The translations under genes and the position numbers were made by a program. 64,000 nucleotides of DNA, from positions 797,503 to 861,502 of the forward strand of contig NW_002060951.1 in the NCBI RefSeq assembly GCF_000150275.1. Direction: 5' to 3'. Of the stretch, positions 36,140 through 64,000 are shown piece by piece (the stretch's first letter is position 1; each line of letters opens with the position of its first letter). The notes below the pieces were generated by a model, which made no database searches, was not told the DNA's origin, and worked only from the letters and a program-made list of their open reading frames with translations. Source of the stretch: Trichoplax adhaerens. Its lineage: Eukaryota > Animalia > Placozoa.

Positions 36140-39100
36140 CTATTTAGCCCACATTTCGGATGCTACAGGGACTTCAATTTCATCTTGCACTTGAGAAGGT
36201 AAGTTAGGAAAAAAATTGATACCAGATAACGCCTCGATATCACGTATACTTGTGGTATGATCTAATAGGTAAACGTCGGTCAACTGCAGCAATAAAAAAA
36301 TCAAAAAGGAGTATTATATAATTAGTCCTCATTCCTATTAACATTATATAACGTCTAGTTTATCAGTTTTAGTAAGTTTACCTGTCCTTGTGGTTTACGT
36401 GAGTTGAGATGCGGTAAGACAAACGATATGACATCAATTTTACCCTGACATGGGTCTATTGCCTTTTCATTTTTACTATCTGCCATTTTCTTTGTAGTTT
36501 GACATTTAACAAATATCTTATAAAAATGCGTGGGAAGGACAACGGTATCGATTGCACCATGAATCCAACTAATTTTGTTAATAAGAGTAGACTATTAATA
36601 TACACATAAATTAAAAATCTGATTCATAAAGTTTTATTTCTAAGTATTAATTTTTAATTTTTCGCCGAGCTTACTAGGAAGGATCGCTCCAAATTTTATT
36701 CCGATCACCAAGAACTAATGAACCTGAAAGGACATAAACACTGCCATATTTTTTAGCCCAAGTTCTCGTTAAGCTTTCGAGGTTAAGCCAAGGGCCTAGT
36801 ATAAAGCAGTTATTATTATTAATTAACAAACTACAATTGTTATTGTTAGATTTAAGCATTGATACCGACATGCTACGATGTATCGAGATGCTAACCTGCG
36901 TTAAAATTATGAATTTGCGGGGCTATATTGGATAGCAAGTAGGTATTAGCTTGCGCCTCTGCATCAAAGTTCATGTCACCTTTTTACAAGTCATGAGAGA
37001 TTTATTAGTTGCCGATATATATTTGTATAAAAATTATCTGCGACTAACATAGCAAACACTAAATTTATTGCTGTAAGCTTAAACATTCAAGATTGATATG
37101 CTAAATCAAAGTTATTGCCTTGCACCACAGCAAATTACACATGATTCAATGATTTTCATACTACGACAGTTTGATGCAGTAAAGCTACGGGTACTCTTTG
37201 CTCGTTTTATATTCGAATAAAGTAATAGCAATAATAATATAAATTCAGAATAGGATAATTTTTCTTTAAATTACCCTGGATCTAAAGAGCATGGCAGCTG
37301 GAACTGCTTATTAGAGTAAAGTTACGGTATACCAGTTTTTAGGTATTAATATTTACAGGTTAAATATTTAAATATACGGATAGTGTACGGTACTTTCAAA
37401 TATGTACGATGCTTATGCATGCAAGTTAAAATTATCTTCAAATATACTCTATCGAATGATATCTGCCGGTATTTAAAATAATCTAAGATCATTAGTATTC
37501 TATCTTTATCCAATACTGCTTTTATGTACCATACCGTTTGGAGCCATATGGCCACGATCGTAGCCAGATCTGGAGTAGCTGGTACAATTAGAAGCTTGAG
37601 ATGCAATGGACAATCGAAGATCACGTCGGAAACAATCGTTTCTCTTTAGGAACCCTGAAGCTTCCTAGTGGCATAAATAATTTCATTGACAACAATACTT
37701 TAACATGTAAGAACTCCGCTTAAGCTAATACGTCAAGAAGGTCTAAATTAATTCTGTACCTTAGTTGTTATTTCATAGCCTACAAACCAAGGTACTCGAT
37801 AGGTGTTGCTATAACTGGTGATGTAATGATTTTGATATAGGATGCAAGTATCAAGAGATACTCGATATTCTGGAATACCCCATGGGAAATTCATCATTTG
37901 AGCAGCAGACTCTAAATGAAAATCAAAATTCAACGTTATTAATAGCAACGATAAATTGGATTAATTAAACTTAAATTATCATGATCTATTTTAAGATGAT
38001 TCTGTTACTGTATAAGAAGACAATTAAATGCTTATTTATATGAAACCTTCTTGCGTAGTCATATTGAGCGCTTGATTGTACAGAGTCAAATTCGCTTTGA
38101 CAACACTCTACAAGATTTAATAAATAATTTTACATAAAAAAATTTTCAAGTATTGAAAAAATTAAACTTTTCAGTTCGATAACAAAAATTGGACAGATAA
38201 TATTATCGCTCTTGATAAAAATTTAATATTCTATTTTTAAAATTTTTTTATTGAATATCAATTTAGGCTTTAGCAAATGGCAGGTGTTGCTTATTTGTAT
38301 AAATTCTATAGCTTTTGCAGAGCGTTATTCCCTTCACTATATCTATCATTAACATAATGCTAAATATAATGCACGGAACTTACGCGGCAATAGGGACAAA
38401 CACAGCTCGAACATCGAGCTCTATCTTCAAATAAAGCAGTATCTGCCGGTATACGGCAAACTGGACCTGGCTGACTCGGAGCTTGCGGGGTAGCAACGCC
38501 TGGATTCCTTAACATGGCTCTCAGTGATCCTAAGACGCCATTATTCTTGGCTGGCTTAATGCCTAGTAACTCTATATATTAAAGATTTTATATTTAATTA
38601 TCAGCAGGTACACATCAATTGCTATCCTTTTCTTTGCTGTAAAATAGATTAGAAACAACGTACTTGTCATGACATTATATAGCTGAATATTTAAAAATGG
38701 TTTAATCTTCTTAGAGCTGTGAAATCCAGGGCCTGAAGCCATAAAAATGGTCCTCATATCCTTTTCCAAATTATCCCAACCACTTGTAGCTAACCCACAC
38801 GCTGTATAATTGGCGTCGTATCTAAGACATAAATTATATAAAATTAAAATACTACTCACTTGTACCTACGAGTGAAGCTATATTGCCATTTTAATATATT
38901 TACTTACATACGTCTAACCAAGTAACCATCCACCATTACGACTATTACATCAGGGATACGCCTAATAAAAAGTAGATTTTAAATGATCAAGTTAAGATTA
39001 AAAAATAGAATAGTTAAAATAAAATTAAGATCTTATATTCCTTTATGATAAATTAGTAGCTAAATCATTAATGCTCAAATTACTTTGAAAATTAAATTCT

Positions 39101-42100
39101 TCAGGTATAAACTGTAATAGTAAATGGTATCGAAATTGCGATCTAAATCATCTATAGGCGTCTGTCGTTATTTCACTATATCTTGTGTATTTGTTTTACA
39201 TTAGCTTTAATTATAAATTATAGTCCACCGTGTACTTATTATTTTATAGTAATTATTTTTGTAACACTAAGCTGATATGACTTTGACCTGCACCCAGTAA
39301 CTACTAGCGTGAATATCGTATTTTGTATCCTTATGAATTTATCTGACGTTTACATAATCTCCTAATTAATGTATCCTACAGCTTAGCTAGAAATGACTCT
39401 CAGCGCTTGATATTATCTTAATTAATACGAGTACCGTATCATTTATTGAATAACTGATATATAATAGCTATAGCTAATCGTCATTTCAAATGAGTTAACT
39501 CAATGAGCTAAATTTAACTAGAATATCCCGGACACAGTATCCAGCATTACTAATAGCCCCTTAGCGATGTCCACTGTAGGTTGAGTCTTAGTAGTTACGG
39601 ATAGCCTGCTATCCAACTAATATGTGTAGCTAATTTTGAAAATACCTACACTGATATCTTACACTGATATCCCACTATAACTATAACCTTAATTAGGTCG
39701 CTGATCTGATAAGGATCACTAAGTATAAGTACTGTGCCGCTAGTCAAAAATTTCGAATTTGTAGCTACATGAATCAAGCTGAACTTAGTGACTTAGAACA
39801 ATCCTTCGTTAATATACTAAAGTACCGGTACCTATATAATGGGACAGGACTGGAACCATTATATACTTCAACCGTTATAACCATTACATAAAATGGGAGG
39901 TTAAGATCATTTTACAACTTGTTGATCTTGTATTTTAAGACGTCATTCATATTTGTGGACAACACCCTGTCAAACATTAGCCAAAGATCGATACAAAATC
40001 AGAATAGTATGATGATATCTCGGATTGTTATGATGATTAACCCTTTGTTTGCTTGATTTGTTTATTTTCTGCTCAAATTTAATTACTAAAACGATTCAAT
40101 ATTAATATACGTCTATACATAGTTTGTATGGTGTAATCGGTGGTATACTGCTAAAATAATTGGGCTTATAAAATGATTTTAAGAGTAGACACAAATTCTG
40201 CAACAGTCAGTTAACATATTTTTAAAAACGTTTATATTTCGGACCGTAACTTAAATGGAAATTTATCGGCAGAACAGGCTCCGCTATTTAATCAACACCT
40301 TACGTAACGATTGAAGCGAAGACGTTATAAAGTTTTAGTCTATGATCAGGGTCTATAAATATTTGAGTTAAAGGCATACAAGCGTAGCATAGTACGATGT
40401 TGGTTAGCACAGTACTTCTAATCTAGATCCATAGCATTACTGCTTATTGCGCCCCCGACTATGTAATAAATAATTATAATGATACTGTAGATACATTCCA
40501 TCATGCCATATATCTATATCGCCTTAGGGATATATGTGCAAATTTACTATAAACTTATGTGAAGATATCTAAAATAATGTGAGCTGGCAGATTTTAAGAA
40601 ATTACTAGAATTGATTTTCTTCACACGAGTATTTAATTACTACCATATATATTAGTACATTTAGGAAAATCTTCGATATGGATGATTAGAGTCCTAACTT
40701 ATCGATTATAACTATACAGTAAACTTAGCTCCAATTTAGACTGTCAAGTTACTCTGGTACGGTATCTAACCTATGTGTATATCTGATATTCGAAATGTTA
40801 CTCTTAGGCTTAGAATAAGCTCTAAGTTGATTACAAGTTGAAAGCTCTAGTCAAGTGAAAATTTGCTTAAATATTGTTTATATTGCATTATAATAAAATG
40901 AAAGAGTGGAAATCTTAATGGATTTTAACATTAAATGTAGAGAGCAAAGTATCATGGCGTGAACCTTTATCAAATGTAATCAATACCATTTAAGTGTGTA
41001 CTGTATCTCTATAATTAGGAGTATGGAACTTCATAACTATAAAAGTGCCGAGATATGCAATTTGTAATAATACAAAACTGAATCACTTTGTTTAGACATG
41101 AATACTTCAAATCCATAAATTGGATAAAATTGTTCAATCTTTATGCAATCAATATCTTAGTATCTCTGCATTAACCGGACTTACGTGTTATTGCGATAAT
41201 GGAAACGAAACGGCAAGTCTTCTTTCTTGAATACAGTAAACTTACTACTTCTACCCTGAATATGATCAAAGTTATCAGTTAAAATTGACAATGGATGTCG
41301 TGAGAATATCATAAATTATTCAATTTACTTTAATCTTTGAAACTACTTCCGTAGCATTTCCTATAAGAAGATAACAGTATTATCAGAAAATGCTACAAGT
41401 ATAAAAAATTTTAGAAACGAAGTCAATGAACCAATTTCTGATGAGCCCTTACCTCCATTAACGAGGATACCTCCGAATGCTCCTTGATTGACGACTTGAT
41501 TTTTATCAACATCAATATACTAATGAAATTATAGCATTATAAATTCAACATCAATCAAAGATTATAGTATACTAATTTATGATATAATAAATTATTATTA
41601 CCGTATTTAAATATCTTATTTTGGAACAAGATGGTTGTTTCATTCCTGGTAAGCAAAGGTAAAGTAATAGTTTATAAGTAGTCCAAACCAGAATAACAAC
41701 GCCACTTAAGATACAATCATGCGTTATAAACCTTACCATGATCAGAAGTAATGATGACATTTACACAATGTTCAGCATTGCGTTGTTTTAATCCTTGGGT
41801 AATGGCACCAATTGCATTATCAATGTTCTTTATTTCTTGATTTACCTATTAACATTTTTTTATTAGTCATAACATAGTTAGCAAATATTCAAGTAGCGCA
41901 GTTGCAAGTGTCAATATATCTCAAGGATAGTATAGCCTGTAAAGATTTAGTAGATTCGCAGTGATTGTATGCGTAAATCAAGCTACTAATAGCTTTCCAA
42001 CTTGAACTCTTAACAGTCTAAAAATTTAAATTTTATGCAGGAAAGAACAATCCAATTAATGTGAGTCCTAATACTCGTATCCGTCTAATATTACCTCATT

Positions 42101-45100
42101 CGATGTTGGACCATATCTAGCTCCTGCTAGTTGAACTTGATCGAAAGTCATGGTAATGAGTTGTGGCCTGGTGTACGAGTAACATTGGTATTAAAAATGT
42201 ATCTCAATCTAGTTATATTTGATCTATTTTTAAAAAATCATAAAGCGCATTATTAATCACAAATTAGATTATATCTGCAAGCAACCGTTTATCGGCAGGC
42301 ATATCAAGCCATTGAAAAAACTGAGTAACGCGATCCATAGCCGTGGCATTCCTATAGTCACAAAAAGTATTTAAATTAGAACTGATGATGTTCTTGGCAT
42401 CTACAATTAGCTGTTCATTACTTACATGTTGGGAGGAAACCGATAATTGGGATGATATCCTATAATAAATCATTTCAAAAATAGAAAAATAGTATTATAC
42501 TACCAATTTACAACAGTATTACTTATATTTAAGACGTTATATTTCTTGAACTGATTTCAAATACTATAATTCATTTAATGTCAACTCTCTTACTGTCTTC
42601 CTACCTTGGAAATTGGCTTGATCTCCTGGCCAAAAGTAGCTTGCTGTAGTAATATTATTTTTGTTAGCGGTTACCCAAATCTATAGAGATGGATAGCCAA
42701 AAGTAAAACTTAACATTAAACTTAACTTGAGATAGAGATTTTAGAGCTTTTTATTAGATATACGGTACTATATTACTGTAGACTTACCGGTTCACCACCC
42801 CACCATTTTTCTTGGGTTCCATTGACGCCCTTAAAATCAAAAGTTTCTTGAAAATTGGGATCGTAAAAATTATCAGCAACAATGCCATGACTAACTGGGT
42901 ATAGACCCTAATTAGTAGAAAGAAATGACGAATTTAGAAAAACTTTATCTCATTACTATTAATAAAATGTAAATGTAAAGAATTCAAATTCCGATAAAAG
43001 GATATTTATCATGTACTGTTAAAATACTGTAGAGATTTGGCAGCGTTTGCGTGGGGAAAACTGGTTTCATATAGTCTGCTTGGGTACCCTTGGAAGCAAA
43101 AGCGGAAATATTGGGTGTTTGACCACGATTAAGATAATCCCAACGGAATCCATTGAGAGAGATGACCAGTAAAGGTGCAGGAGTTATACTACATTTGCAA
43201 ATAAAGCGCTAATGGATCAGCAATTGTCAGTTATAATTTCACGATTGTATCTCTAGCATCTCTTAGGTGTATTAAATTCTAAATTACAATAATTCTTTTA
43301 CCACTCTGAAATGTGTTAGTGGAGCTACCGATTTAATGAAGCTTGTATTCATTAAATTAACCTGCATGGTGGGAATGTTATTGGTGGTAGGGTAGTTGCT
43401 GGTGGAGTTGTAGGTTGTTTAGTAGCCGGTTGTGTAGTAGCAGGTGGTGCAGTTGTCGATTGCTCAGGTGTGGCTGAATTCGTGGATTGCGTAGTAGCAG
43501 GTTTGGTTGAGTATGTGGATTGTGCTGTAGGTGACGATGTTGGGCATAAATTGCCGCCTTGTTGCCCTTGATTTACACCTATTGAATTGAGTAATTATTA
43601 ATTCAACTACAGAACTATTAGCACGGCTTTTTGGCGCAGAATTATCTGACTATACAGTTACAGACCTCTTTGGTTAGCAAACCAGCCGATCATGAACCCA
43701 AGACCGAAAACCACACCAATTACGAGAATGCCGCCAACCTGAATAAAAAATTAGGAATGGTGGAGGAAAAGATTATTTAATTAAAATATGAAATTTTAAT
43801 CTTAAATTTAAAATTATTCTAAATTTTTCGCTTCACTAAAGTGGCCGTTCCATAATAATATCACGGCTTAACTTTTTTAAATTATTAAAATTCATCTCGT
43901 AACGAAAAGGTATAAATTAGGTATTTCCACGCAAAATGTAAGAGCATCGTACGGCGACATCCTATATTAGTAACTCAATTCGTTATCCTTTAATGTGTGC
44001 TTATAATCAAGTTATAATTAATCGCAGATTTTATTCAACATTCACAGGGCTATCTTACAGCGATATAATATTCGTTCATCGTATTCGTGTCACTAGAGCT
44101 CACCCTAAATCCAAACAATACGTTATATATTTTCTTTTATCTGAAAGTAAGGAAATACGGTCCCCTACGGCAACAACAAAATTTAAGTACCGTACCGTAA
44201 TTAATCACTAATGGAAAGAAGCAAATTCATGAGTAAGGAATACAATCATAAGCGAATAAGGAAGCATTATTTATAAGTAAAACGAAGAAGTTTATACTAT
44301 AAATAAATAAAATAATGTAATATTACGATGGAATTGGGTTGATTATGCCTCTGCTTATTAACATACAAGAAAGTCCAGATATATAGCAGTGAAATTGATT
44401 GGATATGTCCACCAAAATGAATCATACTATGGTTATAAGCTTATATACTATAAAGTAAAAATATTAATATTACTACTAAATACGACAGACTTATGTTTAC
44501 ACCTGTCACGTTAACATATACTATAAATTGAAAAAAAATTATCAGTTATCTACGTAAAATCGATGACTACTGAAATATATTATAGTCACCAAATTATTAT
44601 CCAATGGATAAATGAACGCTTGTATAATATTTGTGTAACTAGGGTCCAGCTGCCTATCTATAACAGTTTTCAACTATATGCATGCTTGTGTAAATTCATA
44701 TAAGCGATTTCAATAGATTTCGATAGGAAAATAAGATTTTGCTATTGCGGATAAATCGTAAAATTGAAATCCGTCGCCATATTTATTACGAGCTAAAGGC
44801 TGGTTACAGAAACCAGTATATCATTAGATCCGATCGTTCTCAAATTCAAATCTTTGAGGTTCATTACTTACGACATAAATAATATTTTTTCTCCTAGCAT
44901 CAGCTTTATTGCTGCCTCTAAGACCTTCCACTTCCAACTTTTCTCTCTAAAAAGTAAAATGTTTAAAACTATCAGTATGCAAACAAATATTTGACTCGAC
45001 GACCTCGACTCTGATATAGAATGTTTTAAATAAAATATAAATAAATTTGTTCTATAAGAATGCAAATTCAAAACTACTTCATTCCTGAATTTTTCTATTC

Positions 45101-47405
45101 TTATAAGGGCAAATTTCTATCTAATTTCTATTAGCTGCTATCGAGTGGTTTTTGTTCGTATATAAGTCGAAAGATAACGATTCATGGCTATATTGATATC
45201 AATCTGACATACAGCGGGTAAATAAAGCGTTTTTTTTGCCTCAAATAGAAACAGTTTTGAGTTATAAACTTATGATCTTCCACCTATTTTAATTTAACTA
45301 ATAGTTGTTATTTTGGCTAAAGGCAACAAACAACTTTAATTATTAACCTTGGCTGAAATCACAACAGCCAGTAGTGAAAAATTTGATTTTACACAGTTCT
45401 GCTAAAGCTTTTGTGTATATATGCAAGACCGCTAAAATCATTATTTCTGCAACTGTGTTGTTTAAGTCAGATATTTCAGGAGCACGACTACTTTTGAAAT
45501 TTTATTATAAGAAATAGAGTCTGGAAAGGAATTGCAGCCAATACAGTACTGGATTTTAAATCATATTCAATTCTTGACAAGAATTATCAGACGCCTTGCC
45601 AAGCCTCGTCAATTTGCACGGAAAGATAATAAAATTAATTAATTATAATTTACTATTAAATCTAACTGAAATGGCAAAACCCATTTGAAATTGTTCGCTA
45701 GTTAAGAGCATTAATTCATGTGATACAGGTTTATAGCCAATCTTGGGCTGTTCAATCAATATAATCAATATGGATTCGAAGATATTGATGATATGACGAC
45801 CAATAATTTACTCCATTCAGTAACTTAAATTTGTCTTATTACTGTCTGTCTATCATTATAAAGGTAATTAAATTAATTAATATTCCTATATCATGTAATC
45901 GCCAGTTCTAAGAATTACGAACGGACAATCTCAACCATCTTCAAGATTACTTGAACGTTTCTAGAGAATGACAGTATCTACCAGATATTTTTGGAGAATT
46001 ACGACCGGACAATCCCAATCATCTTCAAGATTACTGGAACATTATTTATACAAGCCATGGAGATCAAACAGAGCCATTAAAAGTCGACTACTTAAATGTT
46101 TATATATGTAGTAAGACAACTTATTTATCCTAGCGGTATTAACCTTGATTCTATCAAATTTTGCATCGAACTTTGACAACTAGGATGGATTTAATGTATC
46201 ACTCTGCTTAACATAGAGAGTAAAATTAAAGGTATTCTATCATTGCGCATTTCTACGACGAAGGCCTAGCAGTATCATTACATAGATCAATTGAATTGTG
46301 ACTAATCCATGCAGTGGCTTTTGCTTTTATCCCTATAGTAGTCTATAATTACGTTGATAATTACCCTAGCAAAATTTTTGTCCGCATTAATTTGGGAAAA
46401 CAGTTTAAAAATATCCTTTCGATATTCGGTAGTAGCTTGGGACTAAGTAGCATCGTTAAAGTAGGATAGGCGGATGACTACCGAATCATAACTAATGCAT
46501 CCAGCTGATTCAACCTTATTCTACACAGTTTGCAATTGAAATTTGGATTGATTTGCTTCAATATCTTGCTATGGATGAAAAATAGATTTATGGTGATAAA
46601 GATCAAATAAATCCAGAATAAACTGCGTCATTGCTTATGCTCTGCCCTTAGTACTTTATAGGTATAATTTCAATTAGACTAATCAATTAACTATCACGCT
46701 AAAATGAGGATTTAAAATGTCCTAACGTCATTCGTTCATACTATCAACATCGAGCAGATTCAATAATATCAATTTGATAATGCTAGTGGTATCAGGTTTT
46801 AACTATCTAGAGGGCTTACATGATGTCTTAACTCCTTCTGTAATCAACATTTGTATCTATTACTACTTCATCTCATTACATTCGTTTTTTTAACGAGATC
46901 AAATATTACCAGTGATCGATAGCTATGTTATATTTAAAATTCTTAATATTACAAATAAAATTTGATTTATTGAGGATAATATCTGGCTTTATCGAATGAT
47001 TGAGGGTATAAAGAGTTGAGTATATAGAGAGGGTGCTGCCTATATATATACAAGCGCTATTAGCAACTGAAATGACATTCAAACTTAGGATCGGAGAATG
47101 ATTATGCCAAAAATGTTTGAAACTGTTATTTTAAATTTATGTGCACGACGTATACGTGCAAGATCTATTCAATATTATCTTACGAGGGACAGCATCAATA
47201 TTTAGGAGTAGCCTAAAATTTTTCGAATCAAATCTATTATCAGGGAAAGAAATATACTTTTATATTCTAAAAAATAAAAACTTAGCAAGTAACGGAGAAA
47301 TTGGAACAATTTTAACGTAGATTCTTGATTGAATGCTGGTAAAAATTAGCTAAAATTATTCCTATAAAATTGTAGTTATTTCCTTACCTCTATTCTATTC
47401 TCCAT
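36140..47405 (-). CDS. ENPP-family copy A: type II TM, Thr/Pro stalk, degenerate alkaline-phosphatase-fold PDE domain, intact-looking DNA/RNA non-specific endonuclease domain (~24 exons; 47405-47388, 44946-44872, 43738-43666, 43578-43362, 43188-~43016 ... 37664-37535, 36979-36896, 36795-~36674, last exon ending 36140)
   Basis: TM VVGGILVIGVVFGLGFMIGWF after RRK; [109 protein letters not shown]. Confidence 0.9.
45911..46040 (+). repeat. 46-bp imperfect direct repeat (45911-45956 and 45995-46040) in intron 1 of ENPP A
   Basis: agaattacgaacggacaatctcaaccatcttcaagattacttgaac vs agaattacgaccggacaatcccaatcatcttcaagattactggaac. Confidence 0.85.
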
Positions 47406-48664: not shown

Positions 48665-51135
48665 AGGACGTGCGGGATAAAATTTTAATTTCCTAACCAT
48701 CATCATTCTAATAACCTCTTCTATTTACTTATTTTTCAGGTTACAAGAATAAGTGATACAACAATGCATTAAAATCCTCCTATAAAAGAACAGTAAAATA
48801 GGCTCAGGCACGTCTTTTATATTAACACTACGGCAATATGCCTTTTTTCCTATAATTTTATAAAATAAAATAGCTGAATATAAAATTAAGCTATTTTAGG
48901 AATGATTGCTCTAACCGTCAAAACGATCTCAATTAATTTAGTAGTTAAAGGAGTTCATATACAGGTATACAGACCTATAGATACTTTATGCTTTCGAGAA
49001 AATATTGCAGTGCTGTATTGTTGCAATCCCTACTCTACAGTACTACATACCGCATATTGGAGAAATTATTACAGCACTGTTTATTTATTATTCTTACATA
49101 AACTGTATTCTTGGTGAATGCATAAAATTGATTTTATTACACCTCAATTTCCATTAATTATCATTGCAGTTGAACATGTAATTTTACCTATCAATATAAG
49201 CAGACCACTTATCAATAAGAATATATAAATGGCTAAAGTTGGTCTTTATTTCAAATAAGAGATTAGTCTAAAGCTATCAAAAAAAATTGTAAATTGCATA
49301 ATTATTTCTATTGTAGATTATACGCATTGAAGTTTTCATATATTCTAATTCATTAATGCGTTGTAAAATATCTTAACTCATACTCTACTAATAGCCTATA
49401 AAATATTTACTAGCAACTATAAATGATAAATTGAATTTATAACGCAAGGTCCAAACTGTAAGCGTTTAGAACTATGAAAGTGCAATTAACGAATCATGTA
49501 AGCTAGTAAAGTTAAAAAATCGACCATAACTCTGTGGGTGTTTGGGTTTCAAACGTAACTTGTAACTCTGCTGAAAGTTCAGGGAAGAAATCGATGCCAG
49601 TCAATTTTTCGATATCAGCTATACTGGAAACATGATCAAAGATTTGCGATACGGCAGACTGTAAAGCAAAAGAAGTGGGAATTCAAAAATCAGAATATTA
49701 CTCCTCAAAATTTGAACTGTAGATACAAAATAATCATTAATAATACATGACCTATATTCGTGTTCAGATATCATCTACAGTATAAGTCTATTATATGCAT
49801 TTATAATATGAAATTTAATACTATGTAATTAAGGGAAATACGCGTCTAATACGTGTGTATGACCTTTAAAACTTACATTATTGAGGCATAAAATCGTACA
49901 AGATACTCGGGTGGACGCATATATCAGATTTTACAATATTGATATATACGAGTAAACTACTACGGATGCGAAATGTGTTGTATCTGCCGAGTATTTAGCA
50001 TAGTAATACTAGCATAAAATTATAAAAATTCAAAGACCTGTAAAGACTATTATTAATGTAACAGCAACCCAGAAAATCTGTACATGGCTACTCCAGTTGA
50101 AAATAACGACGCACAGTACTTATGATACAAAAGACTATTATTAATATGAAATTCCCGTCTAATACCTTGTCACGTACCTTAGTATTGAGAACGTAGACTG
50201 TTAGCAACGTTTAGTATAATGTACAGTAACGTGACTTTCAATTTTTATCTTAAAACATATTTAGCAGCTTATGACTACAAACTACAGATCGTAGTGGAAG
50301 ATTCTATGCTACAGATGACTATATACAGTAGGGTGTCGAGTTACTATTAAAATTAAAGATAAAATAGAGCTGTAATTCATACATTAGGATATAGTTAGTT
50401 CATCGTACTTTGACTGGTAGAAATAGTATCTATATAAATACTGTAGTCGATTGCACATTGGATTAATAATGGTCCGCTGTAAAATTTTGTTACCAATAAT
50501 AACCTGGATATCAGTAAAATATGGTAGAATGTTGCTATACTGCTTGTAGCTGTGAATGCTACAAAGAGCATACTAGCTAGTAACGTTTATTATTCTAATA
50601 GTTCTTTCTAGATACGTTTAGTAGTTGTATTCGGCTAGAGTAGAGCTGTGCAAACCTAATCTTCGTATAAGATTTAATAAAGTTCTAAATTTTCTATAAA
50701 TTATAGATATTTGAGATCGGTTACATACATCACCTACCTGCAAACTATTAACACTAGACTTAAAATACCTATATAAGCAGCTATTAATACAAGTATGTAA
50801 AATATAATTTAAATTATTAATGTAGTATCACTATTTCTATAGAAAAAAGGATAAAGCATCAGTATATTTCGGTATTGTTAAATATTTAAAGTACAGTATT
50901 ATTGCAAGAATCTCATTAACATCAGTGGATTTAATAATATATATCTACAGTTTATACAACTACTATTATCCAAATTTTAAAAAATCGTTTTCTATTGTTA
51001 TTTACGTAATTATGTTTACATGGTTAAATTATAATTTAGACCTCGATTTGACCGATAATAAAATATTACAAGTATTCTTACGTGACATTGAGGTGAGGCT
51101 GATTTACTATGTGGCAGTATAAATGATAATGCTTC
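48665..51135. repeat. Segmental duplication unit (ENPP B 3' end plus ~850 bp of downstream flank), homologous to ~62010-64000
   Basis: Colinear blocks, e.g. gataaaattttaatttc at ~48675 and ~62020, aaagctatca at ~49270 and ~62751, last exon, and intron segments. Confidence 0.85.
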
Positions 51136-54100
51136 CAATTTACCACCACATGGTTTGTGATTGCTTGCTGATCCATTACATGCGACTTGATCCGAGTCTT
51201 GACATTTTACAACTATTTTATAAAGATGCGTCGGAATAGCTACAGAGCCTATTTCGCCGTTTAGCCAACTGAGAATAGAAATAAGGACAATAGCTACTTA
51301 CTATAATCTATTCTTTTAATTAGAATTCTATACTAAAGTGGCTACGATACTACTTACTATGAAGGATCGCTCATGACCGTTTCATGATCGGCTTTTATCA
51401 TTGCTCCTGATATAACAAAAATCCCTCCGTACTTTTTAGACCATTTATTAATTAACATCTCCAAGTAGTTCCATGGTCCTAGTTAAAGCAAGTTTTAGCA
51501 TAATAGAATAAGAGGTCAAGATTTCTGTATCGTAGAATATCTACAGCTTATATAAGTTTTCTTCTATACAGGCTAGTCTAACCTGTCTTAAATGCAGCAT
51601 GGAGCGGTACGATATTAGATAACATGTTTGAATTGGATTGAGTTACCACATCGAAGCTTACATCGCCTTAATCAATTCAAATTTATCAAAATGCAAATTT
51701 TATACATTCTTTTTACAATCACACATTGTAGGACACTAGAATATCTTCTTACTTTTAGGCATGAGATGTCCCTTTTCATAGCTGGAGTTTACATAATTTG
51801 AGCAATTAGAAGTCTGTGTTGCAATATCTAATCGTATGTCACGATGATAGCACGTGTCTTTATTAGGAGAGGCAGTCGATTCCTATCGTAGATATAATTC
51901 TCTTATTTTTAGTTAAAACTGTAGTCAAGTTATGAAGCCTTTGGAGTTTAGCCTAACCTTATCAGACAGGAAATAACCAGCGAATAAAGGTATATGGTAG
52001 ATATTACTATATCCAGATATTATTGCTTATGATAAAGTGANNNNNNNNNNNNNNNNNNNNNNNNNNNNNNNNNNNNNNNNNNNNNNNNNNCAAGATGAAA
52101 GAGTCGATGGAGTATTCTTTCAGCATCTCAAAATAATTATAAAATTGACTCCTAAAGTAGAAGCTTATATAGGTAGGTATCAACTAGTATAAAAAGTATT
52201 CAAATCAATCGGTTGGCCTATTAAGATTACAAAGTGGCAAACTGCAAAATATGAATGATAATTATAATCGTAGCCATAAGTATCATTTAGCTTATCAGGA
52301 CTAGATCAAATTAAAATTACTGATGAATAACCTAAAATAATACTTACATGGCAAAAAGAACAAATACATTCGGTGCAATTCTGTCTAACTGCTAAGATTG
52401 CAGATTCTTGAGGTACTCTGCATACCTTACCTATTGTTTAGAGCCGTGGAGATTTAGTTATATCATTAGCTTATATAAATAATTTTAATTTTATTATTTA
52501 TATCTTATAACGCCTTATTTTTTCTTCCAGACAGGATATAATCCGTCAAAGTAGACTAGCTTACCGGGTAGACTAGCACTAGATTTCGAAATTGGTGGAG
52601 GATTTTTTAGAATATGATGTAGTCTTCCAAGTGTCCCATTATTTTTAGCTGGTGAAACATTTAAAATAGCTAGATGGAATTAATCATACCAGTTAGTATA
52701 CATTAAATCTAATGGTTATCTACAGTATTTAGACTATCTTACCCATTTAAAGCTAGAAATCAAACAAAAATTTTTATTTTGTAAGTTTTATAAAACTAAA
52801 ATTTATTTTGTACCGTATGATTATATGGAAATCTGATTAGAGTTGCATGTTCAGGTCGTGATTAAATTTAATCAAGATTTAATACTTAAATGCTATATCG
52901 ACTAGGGTAACAGCTTCGATACTATAAACATATTAAACCAAATAATATATCCCATATTCTATATATGGTGGGAAAAAGTGAATTTCTTTTAAGCTACGGA
53001 ATTCTTATCAATTTCGTAGCTAAAACTGTTCACAGATTCCTTTGAACCGTCGATACGGCCTATGGTATATTTTTTAACTAGAATAAAAGCTAAACTTACT
53101 AGCCATTAAGTTATAAATTTCGATATTTAAAAAGGGTTTGATAATAAGTCCACTCTTAAAGGCTGGTCCGCCTGCTATAAAAATTGTTCTCATGTCTGGA
53201 TCCAGATTGTTCCAACCGTGATTAGCGCCATGGCAGGATGTGAAATCAGGATCATATCTACGATTTAAATTTTACTTAGCTTTGATCATCTATAAACAGT
53301 TAAACGATATTTTAAAGACTGCTAATAAGACTTACGAAGGTCTAACGATCCAATTTGAATCCGGCAAAACTACAATTTCGGGTATACGCCTAATTGAAGT
53401 AATGGATCATTGCATATGCTTGAGAACAATACGGTATAAAGCATCCCAATTCATTATAAAAATTCATTAAACTAACCTGTTATCATAATAGTGCATACGA
53501 ATTGGCAATTCTTCTCTCTTAAATACTTTCCAGTGTTTATTTTTACACTGCAAATACGTGTACGTAAAATATTCGAAGTTAAATTAAATAGAATTTAGTT
53601 ATAAAATGCTGAATTGATATACTTTTCTGTATAATAATTATAAAAAACAAAGAAAGAATCCTTACTCGCAACTGTTCTACAACTTCATCAACGTTACCTA
53701 TGAGAATTAAAGGAAAATAAAGCTTATCCAATTAAGACATATTTAGCAGTTTATGGTTACAGATGCTTAATGTCATCTAGAACTAGAGGACAGCATTCAG
53801 TGTTTGACTGGTCTCATTTCAAATATAAATTTGGATTTAACATAGAACAGTATAGCAAGTATGATCAAAGATAAAAAATCCACTCAAGTTTGTGTCATAA
53901 TATTCATAAAAAGCTTGCACTACTTGTAATTTTCTTAACAATATCAAGGACAGAGATTCTTTCAATAGTTATGAATGCCATTGTTAAAAATCTTCTTTGT
54001 AACAAGAAACCGGGTCTTAAACACTATCTTCACTAGTACTCGTGTTCCCAACTAACTTAGGGACATATCGTAGTTCAACTAACTCTCAGCTACACAAATA

Positions 54101-57100
54101 AGCTACTAATGAGTAATAGGTTTAAATACTTCACTTTATTTTCGTTAAACTTAGTCATAAAATGTACTAAAGAAAAACGTAAGAATATTCTTAGCAATTA
54201 TAGTCAAAAGATCCTGCAAGTGACTAACTGAAACTGAGCAGCTAAGCTAGTGCTCGGCTTTTTATAGTCTCAGCAAACGCCGATGGTGCACTTGTGAATA
54301 TTCTTGACATAACGACTTATACTGTAAAGTATACATATCCTAGTATAGCAACTAGAGCCTCAAGGCTCTGCAAAGTAATTGCACCTTACACTTAAGGTGT
54401 TATTAATTAACGTTTACTGTGTAATTAACTCGTTTTGCTGTATTAATGATCCTCATAAATCACTATTTCGATATTAGAAGCAAGTAAGTAAGACTTAAAT
54501 TTTATGCATTCCTTGAAGAAATTTCTGTCCTTTTTATTAATGTCTTGTACTGAAGATCATCATAAACTATTGCCACAAGCGAGACGTAAATAATCTACAT
54601 AGATAGCATAAAAGCCTCCTTTACTCATTAATTCTTTTGCACTAACAGTATCGGCAAATTAACACTTCAACTATACGAGTATCAAGTAGGGGCAAAAAAA
54701 TCTCTCATCTTCTATCTGATACCTAAAATATTGATAGAGAGATATACGCTAAACTAATTAACATTCAAAGTACCTGACCTGATTTGGTTTGAATATCGCC
54801 AAAGCCTCCAGAATTGCGCACAGAGACATTGGTTGTATTGACATACTACATCAATTATGGATCAGATCATCAGTTAGTGATAAAGAGATCGACTCTTAAA
54901 TTAGCACTTTCTATTATTTTGCTATACTAATAATAATTTATTCATGGAAAAGATTACCTTGTCGAAGTAAATGATTCGGTTGCAGCATGTCTTCCTTATA
55001 CCTCGAAACATTAAATAATGATAAAATTTTCATCGCGATACTAGAATGCTAGAAACTAGCGCCTAGCATATTAATTAAACAGTACTTCCACTTAAAGAAG
55101 CGATACCGAATTCAATCAGTAACCAAAATCTAAATCAAATATTTGATCTCACAGTATTCTTACCATGATTTGCAGTTAGGATAATATTAACGCAATCTTG
55201 CATTCCTCGCTCCTTCAAACCGTGTAAAATAGCTCCCATTAAATCATCAATGACTTTAATTTGCTCATTGACCTGAAATGAATTTTAAAATAACTAGTTC
55301 AAAATAGCGTAAAACTACTTGTAATATAGATCGTATCAACTTGATCTGGATGGAAATGTCAAACTATTAGTCTGAAGATAGCGAAATATACATTGAAATA
55401 TGATGATTGCATACTTCTGGTGAATCTGGGCCATGTCCACGTGCTGCAACATCCGGTTCATCAAAATATAAGATCATCATCGTAGGGCTTCATAAAATGG
55501 TATGCTAATTTAGTCAATTGCTAGGTGGTATTGCGGACTATTCATCCAAAATTATTTAGAAAGCAATATTTACCGTTCATCTTCAGGCATTTCAATCCAT
55601 TTAAAAAATTGATCTACACGATCCATGAAGGACACTGCTCTATACAACATAGATATTGAGAACAATATAACACATACGGCTTTCTATCTTGGCAACAAAT
55701 ATTAAGCGTGCTTTATATCACAGAATATGATTCTCAAGAGTAATTCAACAGCAAATTTAGATCAAGAATGGTGACTGGATTTGTGTTACATACCCATCAT
55801 AAAGGTACCAATAATTCGGTCGATAGCCTAACAGTAGAATATTTAATTTATAATTAAATAAATTCCATTTTTTATTACATCTTAAGCTGCACAGCCGATT
55901 CAAAGCCAAAAATATGCTAGCTAATAGTTACTTAACTTCTAACTAGGCAAAGCAAAGCACGATCTACACTAAAATATTTATGGATCATTTTTGAAATTGT
56001 CTATTTCATGAAACATTTAAGCACTAAAGAATGTGAGCTGTTGTAGCTGACTATATTATGCTATTAGAGACCGTATAGAGTAGGAATTTTACTGTGCACT
56101 AAAACCGCTCAATTTTTTTTAAGTATTTACAATAAATAATTCCTTCAATCCTATCAATCCTATCAAACTCTATGATATTGATTACCTGCAATCTCGGAAG
56201 CAGATCCGACCCAAAAGTAGGTAGCTGATTTCAAATTGTGTTTTCTTGCCGTTACCCAAATCTAAAGATAAAGCGAAATATGGGAGTATTGTAGATTAAT
56301 TAAGTTATTGGGCCATCAACAGTTTTTAAGAAGTAGTTTACTTACCGGTTCACCTCCCCACCATCTCGATTGAGTAGCATTCCTCGATCCCATAAAAAAT
56401 CGTTGGTTGTAAACAGGATCATAAAAGCTGTTTGCTACGATGCCGTGGTAGGCAGGATACAATCCCTAAATAGTACACGCTCAGTAATCATGACATATGC
56501 AGTTCCACCTGTCATTTCATCGATTTTTTCAATACAACTAACCGTTACTATGGTATAAAGGTTGGGAAATGTCTTGGTAGGAAAAACAGATTCCATATAT
56601 TCGGCTCGAACACCCTTCGCAGCTGAAAAATAAAGTAATGTGATAAATATATCGAGTGAAGATCAGAAACAAGTGGCTTTCGATCATTAACAGGTTAAAT
56701 ATAGAAGCTATCTATAAATTATTAGAACCTGAACTAATTATATTTGTAGATGGCAGCAATGACGTAGGACAAAATCGGTGTTAGAAATGGCAGTGACATA
56801 TATATATATAACATAGGTTAACATATATAGTAATGCTAAAGGACAATGTGTGTCCCTGCTACGTAATAAAATCATTAACTCACCAAATTTGGATATATTA
56901 GGAGAAAATCCACGATTAAAGAAATCCCAGCGAAATCCATCAACGCCAACTAACAATAACGGTTTTACTTTTGCTCTAATATATTAGTGCGCAAATGTAT
57001 AGTTTAAGAAGCTGGATTAGTATCATGACTTGAAAATAATTGAAAATCAGCGCAATACTCTCATCGTATCCTATGGTGTGCCCTTTACTTTAATAGTAAT

Positions 57101-59110
57101 CAATAAGTTTTTCAGTGCTAAGTTATGAATCAAACTCCTACAATTGTTTGCATACATACTTGCAGATGTCCGGAATAGTCGGTTTAGTCGGTTTTGAAGC
57201 TGTTGGTCGAGAATTAGTAGCTGGTGGTGGGCTAGCTGGCCGTTCAGTAGTTGGGGGTATCCTATTGGTAGCTCTTGTTGCCGTCATAGTTGGGCGAGTT
57301 ATAGTAGAATCCTGTTCGCCTAAATGACCATTGGCTACGATATTTTCAAATTTATAGTAAAGTATATCAAAAACGACTAATAAATTCTTTGCGAAGCAAA
57401 ATCGTATATTATGCAATCGATTTCATCCAATAACTAGAAGATCAGTATAGTTCAATGAATTTAGTAATGACTGTGTCGCATGATTAGTATACATTTGACG
57501 AATGTTGTCTAAGTAAATGGATGTTTACGTAGGTATTAATCGCTCTATATTTTTAAATTTTTCATTATTTAGCTTAGAAGTGAGTATGCTGGCTAGAAAC
57601 TTCCATCAACAACTCTATGCAATTTATTGATCGTTGGAATATTGATTTTTCAACGCAATCAGTCTGATAAGAAGAACACATCGACAAATAAACTCATTAT
57701 TTTCTCCTTAAATAGGTATAAATTTTTGCTTCGCTACTAAACAGCTCCGTAATTTATCCATCACCTATACATTTACACTGATTTCTAACGCACTTCTGTC
57801 AAATTTAGTCCATAATAACATCCAAATTTACCTGCTTTTTGCGTAAATATACCAATCAGAAGACCAATTGCAAAGGCTACGATGATTAGGATAATCCCGG
57901 CAATCTAATTGAATATTTAAGACTAAAATATTATAAATTAAATATCAAAAAAATCTTAGTCTAAGAGAGCTTTGATTTCTAGTCAGGCTTAAACATTCTG
58001 CTATGATACTTTTTTCTTCTGAGTTGTCTAGATATTATTGCTGCCGATAAATACCAGACTAAGGTCTAACATGTATTTCAAGTCCAGTTTTGGACGTGAG
58101 TAAGCCTTTATTAAGTCTGGAAATACAAATTACACTCTATTTCAAGCGAACGATACTTAACGTAATACCTATTCTCAACTAATGATCGTCAGAATTTCGC
58201 TATACTCGTGGGCATCATTGATATATACAATATTTTAAGGATAAGCTGGTCAGAAATGGATTAACTTGGGCAGAATTTTAAAAATATGATCTATAAATCT
58301 AAGAAATACATAAATTAAATGTAACTTCTAATTTCGATTACTTAGGGTATCTTTTTCCAGAAATTAATCGCTTATAATAATATCCTGAGATCTTGTAGTA
58401 GTTTGTGCATTACAACCGCACTTTTATCCTACTGCACGAATGTTTAGTCATACAAATCATTACTTATCTCTGTCTCACGTTCAGTTCTCACGAAAGTTAC
58501 GATATAAATACGTGTAATTAAATGCAATTGTGATTGCAGAAAAGTTTATCATCGATAATCTTTCTACAGCCCTCTATAGCTCTCTAAGAAAGAGTCTTGC
58601 TATCGTGCTAAGTCATAATAATTACTATTTATCCATTATGGCGTTACACGATTACTATCGAATAAATGCATTTAACCTATCACAGACTATACATTAAGGT
58701 AACAATAGTTTACCGGAAGCCAAATCAAGTATAAAGCTCAGTACCCCACTCAAAGTACCTTGCGAGCTTTCTAAGCACAATTTATGTTCATGAATTATAA
58801 TGCTAAAGTTAACAGATCGAACGTGCGATGATAGAAGTACTAGTAGGCGAGTCAAAGGAGTTAAAAATTAGGAAAATATCAATTACTATTATGAGATAGG
58901 CCATATTGCATGCAAATCAAAGATAGTGAGTGATGCAGTAAGCATTTTCAATTTAGCAGTTAAATCAGATCATTCATAATATTAAAAAATAGAATTAGCG
59001 TTTCAGATAGCTTTGTTAGATTGCAGCATTATTTGCCTTAGCGATCTTACCAAATGAGATCTTTTGATTTTATTATTCGATTGTTTCTGGCTTACTTCTT
59101 CAAATTGCAT
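49512..59110 (-). CDS. ENPP-family copy B: type II TM, Thr/Pro stalk, PDE domain with altered metal ligands, degenerate nuclease domain; interrupted by an assembly gap at 52041-52090
   Basis: [133 protein letters not shown]...LWSIF*. The 5' end could extend further upstream. Confidence 0.85.
50168..50725 (+). mobile_element. Probable solo LTR (558 bp) in the last intron of ENPP copy B
   Basis: Absent from the paralogous intron of copy C (~63565-63575). Starts TGTCAC, ends GTTACA. Flanked by TACCT (50163-50167) and TACAT (50726-50730). Internal TATATAAA at 50431 and AATAAA at 50676. Confidence 0.6.
52041..52090. other. Assembly gap (50 N) inside an ENPP B exon
   Basis: Run of N. Flanks translate to sequence homologous to the ENPP A FPWGIP/CILYQNHYITSYS exon. 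Confidence 0.99.
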
Positions 59111-62994: not shown

Positions 62995-64000
62995 CTAAAA
63001 GATCGACCATAACTCTGTGGGTATTTGGGCTTCCAATTGAACTTGCAACTCTGCTGGAAGTTCAGGGAAGAAATCGATACCAGTCAATTTTTCTATATCA
63101 GCAATGCTGGAAACATGTTCAAAGATTTGTGATACGGCAGACTGTAAAACAAAAGATGCAAGAATAAAATAAAGGAATACTGCTCTTTAAAAATGTACAT
63201 TGTAGATATAAAATAATCATTAAAATATAAAATTAATACTACAACTAAAGAAAAATACTTATCGAACATGTTTGTGTATAACAATTTAAAACTTAAATTA
63301 TTGAGATGTAAATATCGTTGTAATGCTAAAAAATATGTCATATTTTTCAAAATTTATATATAACCGCGATTGATACAGAATGTACCGTATACCGGATATA
63401 TAGCATTTCATTACTATAGTAGAATCATAGAAAATTGCAAAATCGGTAAAGACTATTACTAATGTGAAAATAACCCAGAAAATCTGTCCATAACTACGCA
63501 ATTAAAAATTATTAACGCAGAATATCATTGATGTAAAAGGCTATTATTTACAAAAGATTCCATCTAGTATCTGCAAACTATCAATACTAAACTTAAAATA
63601 TCCATTTAAACAACTGTTAATACAATTATCGTAAAAAAATTTAAAATATTCATATAATATCGCTATTACTACGGGAAAAAATATGAAGCATCACTATGTT
63701 TTAGTATCTTTCTATCATTTAAAGTGCAGTATTAATGTAAAATTCGTGTAAGTGTTGTTAATACTAAGGTCAATTCCACATTAGCATCAGCAGATTTTAT
63801 GCATATGAGTACGTATAGTTTGTATGAGTTTTATGACTCAATTTTAAAACGTCATTGCATCATTATTTATGCAATTATGTTTACATGGTTAAATTATAAT
63901 TTAGACCTCGATTTGACCGATAATAAAATATTACAAGTATTCTTACGCGACATTGAGGTGAGGCTGATTTACTATGTGGCAGTATAAATGATAATGCTTC
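62995..64000 (-). CDS. ENPP-family copy C, last two exons only (64000-~63946 and 63141-62995); gene continues beyond the window
   Basis: EALSFILPHSKSASPQCR | [48 protein letters not shown], nearly identical to the copy B C-terminus. Confidence 0.9.

Follow-up and report, generated by a model that had tools for sequence, protein, structure and literature searches.

A placozoan ENPP1-3-type protein whose catalytic and pseudo-catalytic domains appear to be exchanged

Vertebrate ENPP1 and ENPP3, secreted ENPP2 (autotaxin) and snake venom phosphodiesterase are built in one order, with a type II anchor (ENPP1/3), a phosphodiesterase (PDE) domain, a Cys-rich lasso linker and a C-terminal PF01223 domain. 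In the PDE domain Zn1 is bound by two His and an Asp, and Zn2 by two Asp, a His and the Thr nucleophile (PMC8808174). The nuclease-like domains of vertebrate ENPP1-3 lack the catalytic His and are inactive according to literature accounts, and textbooks and reviews regard the C-terminal domain as the relic of a dead nuclease, with no role beyond stabilising the PDE domain. The active enzymes of this nuclease fold, EndoG, EXOG, Anabaena NucA and Serratia nuclease, are soluble mitochondrial or secreted single-domain proteins. Here we analysed a 64,000-nucleotide stretch of the Trichoplax adhaerens genome (contig NW_002060951.1, positions 797,503 to 861,502 of the forward strand; the whole stretch is referred to as the window and supplies the coordinates used below). 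The gene TRIADDRAFT_64138 (XP_002115076, UniProt B3S3V7) lies on its minus strand, from 47405 to 36140. Analysis of its sequence supports an ENPP1-3-type protein in which the catalytic and pseudo-catalytic domains have been exchanged.

Examination of the PDE domain revealed the loss of its binuclear zinc centre. To place the ENPP residues we used HMMER alignments to autotaxin and snake venom PDE chains together with a MAFFT alignment of 27 sequences; the joined 841-amino-acid model of the protein was used for local alignments, trees and counts only, and database and structure searches were run with exons or with the public models of the gene (P0166) and of its Trichoplax sp. H2 ortholog (P0280). 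The positions D218, T256, N277, D376, H380, D423, H424 and H535, expected to read DTNDHDHH, read N, T, D, Q, A, D, H and S. Codons read back from the window gave AAT for D218N (43154-43152, in SLNGF), GAT for N277D, the phosphate-binding Asn (42874-42872), CAA for D376Q (42133-42131), GCT for H380A (42121-42119) and AGT for H535S (38784-38782). The Thr nucleophile is kept at 43046-43044, as is the SDHG motif at 41743-41738, with D423 at 41743-41741 and H424 at 41740-41738. All three Zn1 ligands (D376, H380 and H535) are thus replaced, by Q, A and S, together with one of the four Zn2 ligands (D218, now N), and neither the seven-residue set that binds two Zn2+ ions nor the phosphate-binding Asn is intact. 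These readings agree in every position with a preliminary description of this DNA, and they support its view that the PDE domain is catalytically dead, as judged from the residues replaced. The same description had suggested that the pseudo-PDE might serve as a nucleotide-binding module; this found no support, because the residue beside the nucleophile is Leu (TLPNLY) where relatives carry an aromatic Phe (TFPNHY).

To our analysis the substitution pattern was specific to this gene. Among 150 ENPP homologs (600-1100 amino acids, aligned pairwise to the model), NTDQADHS was found only in TRIADDRAFT_64138 and its H2 ortholog, and DTNDHDHH was universal in the others, apart from gaps that stem from faulty gene models. 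The best 150 matches of a representative-protein search contained 130 SxDGFR-type motifs, not one of them with Asn. Sequencing error was considered as a source of the changes. The H2 ortholog, which was sequenced independently and is 98.9% identical, carries the same substituted residues, and D376Q, H380A and H535S each lie two base changes from the usual codons. Transcript evidence came from contigs of four public runs placed on 36500-42499 (6000 letters) and covers that stretch; X5 and X6 share a study and are recorded as RNA-Seq; X4 comes from a second study, and that it is RNA is a guess. On the motif exons, the contigs of these three runs showed 0 other letters. Since the ortholog agrees, the contigs carry no differing letters and three of the changes require two bases each, sequencing error does not account for the substitutions. 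Zn1 ligands were also lost naturally in a viral ENPP homolog, the Fowlpox virus alkaline phosphodiesterase-like protein (P0372): Gly takes the place of D376 and Leu that of H380, and its nuclease-like domain is dead.

We also examined the C-terminal domain, in which the full beta-beta-alpha-metal catalytic set of the EndoG/NucA/Serratia nuclease was found to be kept. The dEndoG structure and human EndoG mutagenesis papers (PMC2790893, PMC2653514) identify the residues that bind metal or DNA or activate water: within DRGH the Asp, the Arg and the water-activating His, and outside it the SN-Asn (human N163), Gln181, the Mg-binding Asn187 (human N172), Glu195, Arg199 and an Arg of the Serratia R57 type, with Gln181 and Glu195 of dEndoG holding the Mg2+ hydration shell. 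In TRIADDRAFT_64138 the DRGH motif is encoded at 37559-37548 (GAT CGT GGC CAT), with the general-base His at 37550-37548. Counted from this His, the SN-Asn stands at +22 (36929-36927; human EndoG N163), Gln at +26 (36917-36915; dEndoG Q181), the Mg-Asn at +31 (36902-36900; dEndoG N187, human N172), Glu at +39 (36778-36776; dEndoG E195), eight residues beyond the Mg-Asn, and Arg at +43 (36766-36764; dEndoG R199), four beyond the Glu. The Arg of FRRD (37628-37626) corresponds to Serratia R57, FRRD being aligned to FRPD of NucA, and LESLTR aligned to LEKYSR of EndoG. All nine catalytic, metal- and DNA-binding positions checked are present, in the spacing expected of the active enzymes. The best solved matches of the DRGH exon were Drosophila EndoG (SGYDRGHMA identical), Anabaena NucA and EndoG, not ENPP chains, and HMMER comparison of the nuclease domain gave E=5.5e-22 for EXOG, 1.2e-21 for Drosophila EndoG and 1.6e-16 for EndoG. 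The EndoG/NucA active site that had been recognised here from the letters was therefore confirmed, and it supports a nuclease domain that is predicted to be catalytically live. Whereas vertebrate ENPPs combine seven Zn ligands with a nuclease-like domain free of catalytic residues, TRIADDRAFT_64138 has lost 4/7 of the ligands and has a complete nuclease set. It shares DRGH, SN-Asn, Gln, Mg-Asn, Glu, Arg and the FR-x-D Arg with EndoG, EXOG, NucA and Serratia nuclease, but carries them behind a pseudo-PDE in a chain predicted to be tethered at the cell surface.

The overall body of the protein is that of ENPP1-3. Minus-strand open frames gave collinear Pfam matches, to PF01663 in the upstream exons and PF01223 in the downstream exons, and Pfam, HMMER and Foldseek all placed a PDE domain (PF01663), a linker and an Endonuclease_NS-fold domain (PF01223) in one chain. 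HMMER matches to vertebrate ENPP1/ENPP3, autotaxin and snake venom PDE had E values of about 1e-89 to 1e-72, with most Cys conserved. At the N-terminus a hydrophobic helix (residues 20-53) follows basic residues and leads into a 72-amino-acid Thr/Pro stalk; the chain carries 10 N-glycosylation sequons and 14 Cys, mostly conserved. From these features we infer a type II single-pass ectoprotein, as in ENPP1/3, in line with the surface location proposed for it. Unlike the vertebrate ENPPs, it has no somatomedin B-like (SMB) domains and no EF-hand-like motif, and has the Thr/Pro stalk instead; no PF01033 match was found on P0166, its paralogs or its cnidarian relatives, whereas the vertebrate matches carry PF01033. 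AlphaFold2 was run on P0166 with 42 homologs, so that the folded model is without the 36 residues of two exons added below. It returned a mean predicted local distance difference test score (pLDDT) of 81 and a predicted template modelling score (pTM) of 0.80, with both domains mostly above 85 and stalk residues 54-117 disordered (pLDDT about 30). Foldseek matched whole NPP3, ENPP1, autotaxin and venom PDE chains at template modelling (TM) scores of 0.70-0.82 over about 740 columns, and the predicted packing of the two domains is therefore the vertebrate one; in this model the catalytic cleft of the nuclease would be expected to lie free and not buried. Taken together, these data show the two-domain body of ENPP1-3: the chain begins with a short cytoplasmic tail and a transmembrane helix, a mucin-like stalk rich in Thr and Pro follows, and the PDE and nuclease domains come after it with the Cys-rich linker between them. 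The gene is expressed and selectively maintained.

TRIADDRAFT_64138 is the first of five tandem ENPP genes, here called this gene and copies B to E, all on the same strand, and the array allowed the two sites to be compared between paralogs. All four other copies keep the PDE set DTNDHDHH. Copies D and E read NRGH with the rest of the nuclease set intact; copies B and C read EKGH and carry Gln>Leu, Mg-Asn>Lys and Arg>Asn in the nuclease site. Copies B and C share array, strand and architecture with TRIADDRAFT_64138 and are its mirror image, with an intact PDE site and a decayed nuclease site. The closest relatives are copies D and E (43-50% identity for the paralogs) and the cnidarian 'ENPP3-like' proteins of Acropora and Hydractinia (about 39%), which have the same architecture and an intact nuclease set (DRGH in the cnidarians, NRGH in D and E) but, unlike TRIADDRAFT_64138, a full PDE zinc site as well. 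Outside placozoans a full nuclease set together with a full PDE set was found in the Acropora and Hydractinia proteins, and TRGH stands in Oculina. Octocorals, a sponge, hemichordates, echinoderms, arthropods, a tardigrade and vertebrates have a decayed nuclease set. The survey of early-branching animals that had been proposed thus recovered DRGH in Acropora and Hydractinia, while the accompanying loss of Zn ligands was confined, among the homologs aligned, to TRIADDRAFT_64138 and its H2 ortholog. Copies D and E and the Acropora and Hydractinia ENPPs are candidate dual enzymes, and intact PDE and nuclease sets in hexacoral and hydrozoan ENPPs and in copies D and E favour the suggestion that the ancestral ENPP nuclease domain was catalytic.

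To follow the two domains separately we compared maximum-likelihood trees built for each. In both, the placozoan copies formed one clade with TRIADDRAFT_64138 sister to the rest (Shimodaira-Hasegawa-like approximate likelihood ratio test, SH-aLRT, 99-100). PDE distances from the placozoan ancestor were 0.59 for this gene, 0.34 for B/C, 0.40 for D and 0.30 for E; nuclease distances were 0.32, 0.70, 0.32 and 0.43, respectively. The PDE branch of TRIADDRAFT_64138 is 1.5-2 times longer than in its paralogs and its nuclease branch is as short as the slowest paralog's, and the B/C nuclease branch is 2.2 times longer than that of TRIADDRAFT_64138. Sequence identities repeat this reciprocal pattern, with a fast PDE and slow nuclease in this gene and the opposite in B/C. 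The PDE domain, having kept its fold after losing the zinc centre, is clearly still constrained, as a scaffold would be.

Selection on the gene was examined with the contigs of X4. The exons covered by contigs (1513 nucleotides) showed 1 difference, a synonymous GAC>GAT at 41217, compared with 23 in the listed intronic contigs (2163 nucleotides; Fisher P = 7.7e-5), a comparison made at contig level between one pair of strains. Exonic divergence was 16 times below intronic, with no nonsynonymous change in the covered part, and this indicates purifying selection on TRIADDRAFT_64138. Spliced contigs reached depths of 142, 101 and 300 in X5, X6 and X4, respectively, and introns were covered by thin contigs only (depth 2-9). 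A check for pseudogene decay that the preliminary description had called for therefore pointed to an expressed and constrained gene.

The exon structure was established by combining these contigs with the public models. P0166 mapped to the window with 100% identity, and its start ATG at 47405 and stop TAG at 36142-36140 agree with the limits given in the preliminary description. Fifteen splice joints were listed on the RNA-covered stretch, all GT..AG on the minus strand; they back the bulk of P0166 and reveal two further exons missing from it, at 42351-42286 (22 amino acids) and 41645-41602 (14 amino acids), both of which are also in P0280. The RNA joints to these exons rule out the JGI model P0166 as complete. 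The resulting model, joined in a local script, has 25 exons and 841 codons with no internal stop. Exon 1 (47388..47405, MENRIE, start codon 47405-47403) rests on the mapping of P0166 and is GT-AG compatible. Exon 2 (44872..44946) encodes the cytoplasmic tail ending in ARRKNIIYV and is in both the H1 and H2 models, exon 3 (43666..43738) the transmembrane helix of the predicted type II anchor, which AlphaFold2 draws as a helix, and exon 4 (43362..43578) the Thr/Pro/Gln/Ser-rich stalk with 18 Thr and 14 Pro in 72 amino acids.

The PDE domain starts in exon 5 (43017..43188; PF01663 E=8.6e-19), which holds D218N, the Thr nucleophile and TLPNLY, and continues through exon 6 (42788..42907; PF01663 E=1.7e-8), with N277D in GIVADNF, exon 7 (42605..42680; IWVTA...FWPGDQANFQ), into which the loose end of an RNA contig past 42461 reads, and exon 8 (42426..42459), placed by RNA joints and splice sites. 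Exon 9 (42286..42351; NATAMD...ADKR), the first of the two added exons, is fixed by the joints 42166|42285 and 42350|42425 in X5, X6 and X4. Exon 10 (42095..42167) carries D376Q and H380A in FDQVQLAGARYGP, and exon 11 (41737..41845; PF01663 E=2.8e-9) carries SDHG. Exon 12 (41602..41645; MKQPSCSKIRYLNT), the second addition, is fixed by the joints 41519|41602 and 41644|41736, and is followed by exons 13-15 (41519-41453, 41360-41329 and 41255-41185; together 41185..41519), also supported by RNA joints and containing the synonymous site at 41217. Exon 16 (38908..38961) lies beyond a long intron and is reached by the joint 38960|41184, and exon 17 (38664..38821) carries H535S in ATSGWDN. The end of the PDE domain and the Cys-rich lasso region fall in exon 18 (38384..38571), supported by P0166 mapping, alignment and RNA, and the rest of the linker and the start of the nuclease in exons 19-20 (38107-38047 and 37911-37760; together 37760..38107), joined by RNA. 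The nuclease motifs are distributed over exon 21 (37535..37664; PF01223 E=3.6e-6), with FRRD and DRGH, exon 22 (36896..36979; PF01223 E=6.4e-7), with the SN-Asn, Gln and Mg-Asn that also align to EXOG, and exon 23 (36675..36795), with the Glu and Arg and without the EF-hand-like motif, read from Pfam, RNA and codons. Exons 24-25 (36568-36382 and 36283-36140; together 36140..36568) encode the C-terminal part of the nuclease and the stop codon. All of these exons lie on the minus strand.

Several features of the models deserve mention. An exon guessed at 39792-39649 from open frames was rejected, since the RNA joints put it inside the 2223-nucleotide intron 38962-41184 and the real exon is 38961-38908. 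This intron stands out from the others, which are 73-276 nucleotides long; it is covered by thin contigs in both orientations (depth 2-9), in which strains differ by about 1%. In TRIADDRAFT_64138 the first PDE exon is undivided; in all four paralogs an intron splits it at about residue 32 (copy B: 56543-56962), so that this intron was probably lost here. The N-terminus of P0280 is not fully right, in that exon 2 is fused to the last exon, the tail, of the upstream paralog (44946 / 49521). The same model uses an internal GT donor at about 43061-43062, joined to 42907, that would delete the segment with the Thr nucleophile. Both this donor and the exon-2 fusion may reflect an alternative isoform, transcriptional read-through or faulty annotation.

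The genome comprises 105.6 Mb in 1414 contigs with 31% G+C. In window numbering, carried on beyond 64000, the minus-strand array runs from this gene (36.1-47.4 kb) through copy B (49.5-57.9 kb; window 49521-57904), copy C (63.0-76.1 kb; 63004-64000 in the window and on to about 76057) and copy D, TRIADDRAFT_58867 (86.4-94.3 kb), to copy E, TRIADDRAFT_58868 (98.6-107.3 kb). The public model TRIADDRAFT_58865 (P0165) is a chimera of copies B and C that spans 51061-76057. B and C encode the same peptides in their nuclease-domain exons, a sign of recent duplication or gene conversion. Public databases already list the gene and its domains under automatic names, 'uncharacterized protein' and 'Endonuclease', with the H2 ortholog entered as 'Venom phosphodiesterase 2'. 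Literature searches with the gene ids, with Trichoplax and ENPP, and for active ENPP nuclease domains revealed no mention of these Trichoplax genes and no ENPP described with a live nuclease or a dead PDE. Full protein searches, covering proteins 0.55-1.75x the query length, identified no ortholog outside Trichoplax H1/H2, and fragments from other placozoans may have been missed at these lengths. In the representative-protein search with exon 5 the gene's own product was not among the matches, and the top matches were mollusc models of 1950-2234 amino acids with two or three ENPP units per chain (P0001, P0002 and P0003, from Dreissena, Mizuhopecten and Nucella). These are either true multi-ENPP proteins or fused tandem genes; DRGH was detected in none of the three.

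We consider it reasonably probable that TRIADDRAFT_64138 is a type II membrane ecto-endonuclease carried on a pseudo-PDE scaffold, which arose by subfunctionalisation of a bifunctional ancestor. The nuclease would bind one hydrated Mg2+ through the Asn at 36902-36900, positioned by the Asp of DRGH, with a water molecule activated by the His at 37550-37548 and the phosphate bound and neutralised by the Arg residues. A flexible O-glycosylated stalk would hold the enzyme at the outer face of the membrane, where it would cleave extracellular DNA and RNA irrespective of sequence, and the pseudo-PDE would be its structural partner, the role that the nuclease-like domain plays in vertebrates. An ancestral ENPP with both sites active, as endonuclease and 5'-nucleotide phosphodiesterase, would have duplicated within placozoans, followed by reciprocal loss of sites: TRIADDRAFT_64138 would have lost the PDE, copies B and C the nuclease, and copies D and E neither. 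The function could be breakdown of extracellular nucleic acids, for example in external digestion of prey, with oligonucleotides passed on to the PDE-active paralogs; a digestive role is plausible in an animal that digests externally. Some observations weigh against this interpretation. The EF-hand-like Ca2+ motif (DxDxDGxxD), which has been reported to be important for the stability of ENPP1-3, is absent in all four placozoan copies and present in cnidarians, sponge and deuterostomes, and the lasso linker could hinder long DNA from reaching the cleft. Conservation was seen in very close relatives only (H1, H2 and the run strains), and the selection test rests on contigs rather than reads in its single strain comparison. 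Exon 1 and the donor that keeps the Thr (43017 versus 43062) lie outside the RNA-covered stretch, with the public model alone for exon 1.

The missing EF-hand-like motif would also fit a protein in which neither domain is catalytic and whose motifs are kept for binding, as a surface receptor or binder of nucleic acids or another ligand; non-catalytic nuclease-like domains of ENPPs are known to have lasted for hundreds of millions of years. We regard such a protein as fairly unlikely, given that nine catalytic, metal- and DNA-binding positions are kept on a nuclease branch as short as the slowest paralog's, whereas these positions decay fast where catalysis has been lost, as in B/C, octocorals, sponge and bilaterians; binding alone would have no use for a general-base His alongside the Mg-Asn and Glu. 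Sulfatases and phosphonate monoester hydrolases hold one metal at the equivalent site. A PDE domain repurposed in the manner of these mononuclear members of the alkaline-phosphatase superfamily, with a single metal on N218, D423 and H424 and the Thr nucleophile, would make a new hydrolase beside the nuclease. Thr256, D423 and H424 are kept, Asn can still ligate a metal, and the domain is under constraint with a high-confidence predicted fold. However, the Zn1 ligands have become Q, A and S and not the leaving-group Lys or His of the mononuclear relatives, the phosphate-binding Asn is now an acidic Asp, the base-stacking Phe is now Leu, and the PDE branch is 1.5-2 times the paralogs' length, so that we judge repurposing to be quite unlikely.

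That the gene is a decaying duplicate, a young pseudogene, or an artefact of assembly or annotation appears very improbable. No other copy in the tandem array of five has diverged as far, and the gene's two public models disagree; nevertheless its 25-exon, 841-codon frame is open, all tested introns are GT-AG and spliced transcripts are abundant, the excess of intronic over exonic differences in the contig-covered part comes with no change of amino acid, and the H2 genome carries identical residues.

The ecto-endonuclease interpretation bears on how the family began. A complete nuclease site in the ENPPs of early-branching animals, together with a placozoan copy that retains this site and has dropped the zinc centre, makes the origin of the PDE-nuclease fusion directly testable. 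We put forward tentatively, at somewhat less than even confidence, that ENPP1-3 began as a surface enzyme with two activities for breaking down extracellular nucleic acid, its endonuclease making 5'-phosphorylated oligonucleotides and its PDE trimming these to mononucleotides, and that the placozoan array split these jobs and bilaterians kept the PDE only. If so, TRIADDRAFT_64138 would be the first ENPP to rely on the nuclease as its only catalytic domain, and the five-copy array, with members that keep both sites, the PDE only or the nuclease only, would offer a compact example of a two-domain enzyme whose copies have subfunctionalised reciprocally. Should the nuclease prove active, the body plan of ENPP1-3 would have started out as a machine for digesting nucleic acids, with one-armed descendants in the vertebrate enzymes that serve mineralisation, lysophosphatidic acid (LPA) signalling and cyclic GMP-AMP (cGAMP) signalling.

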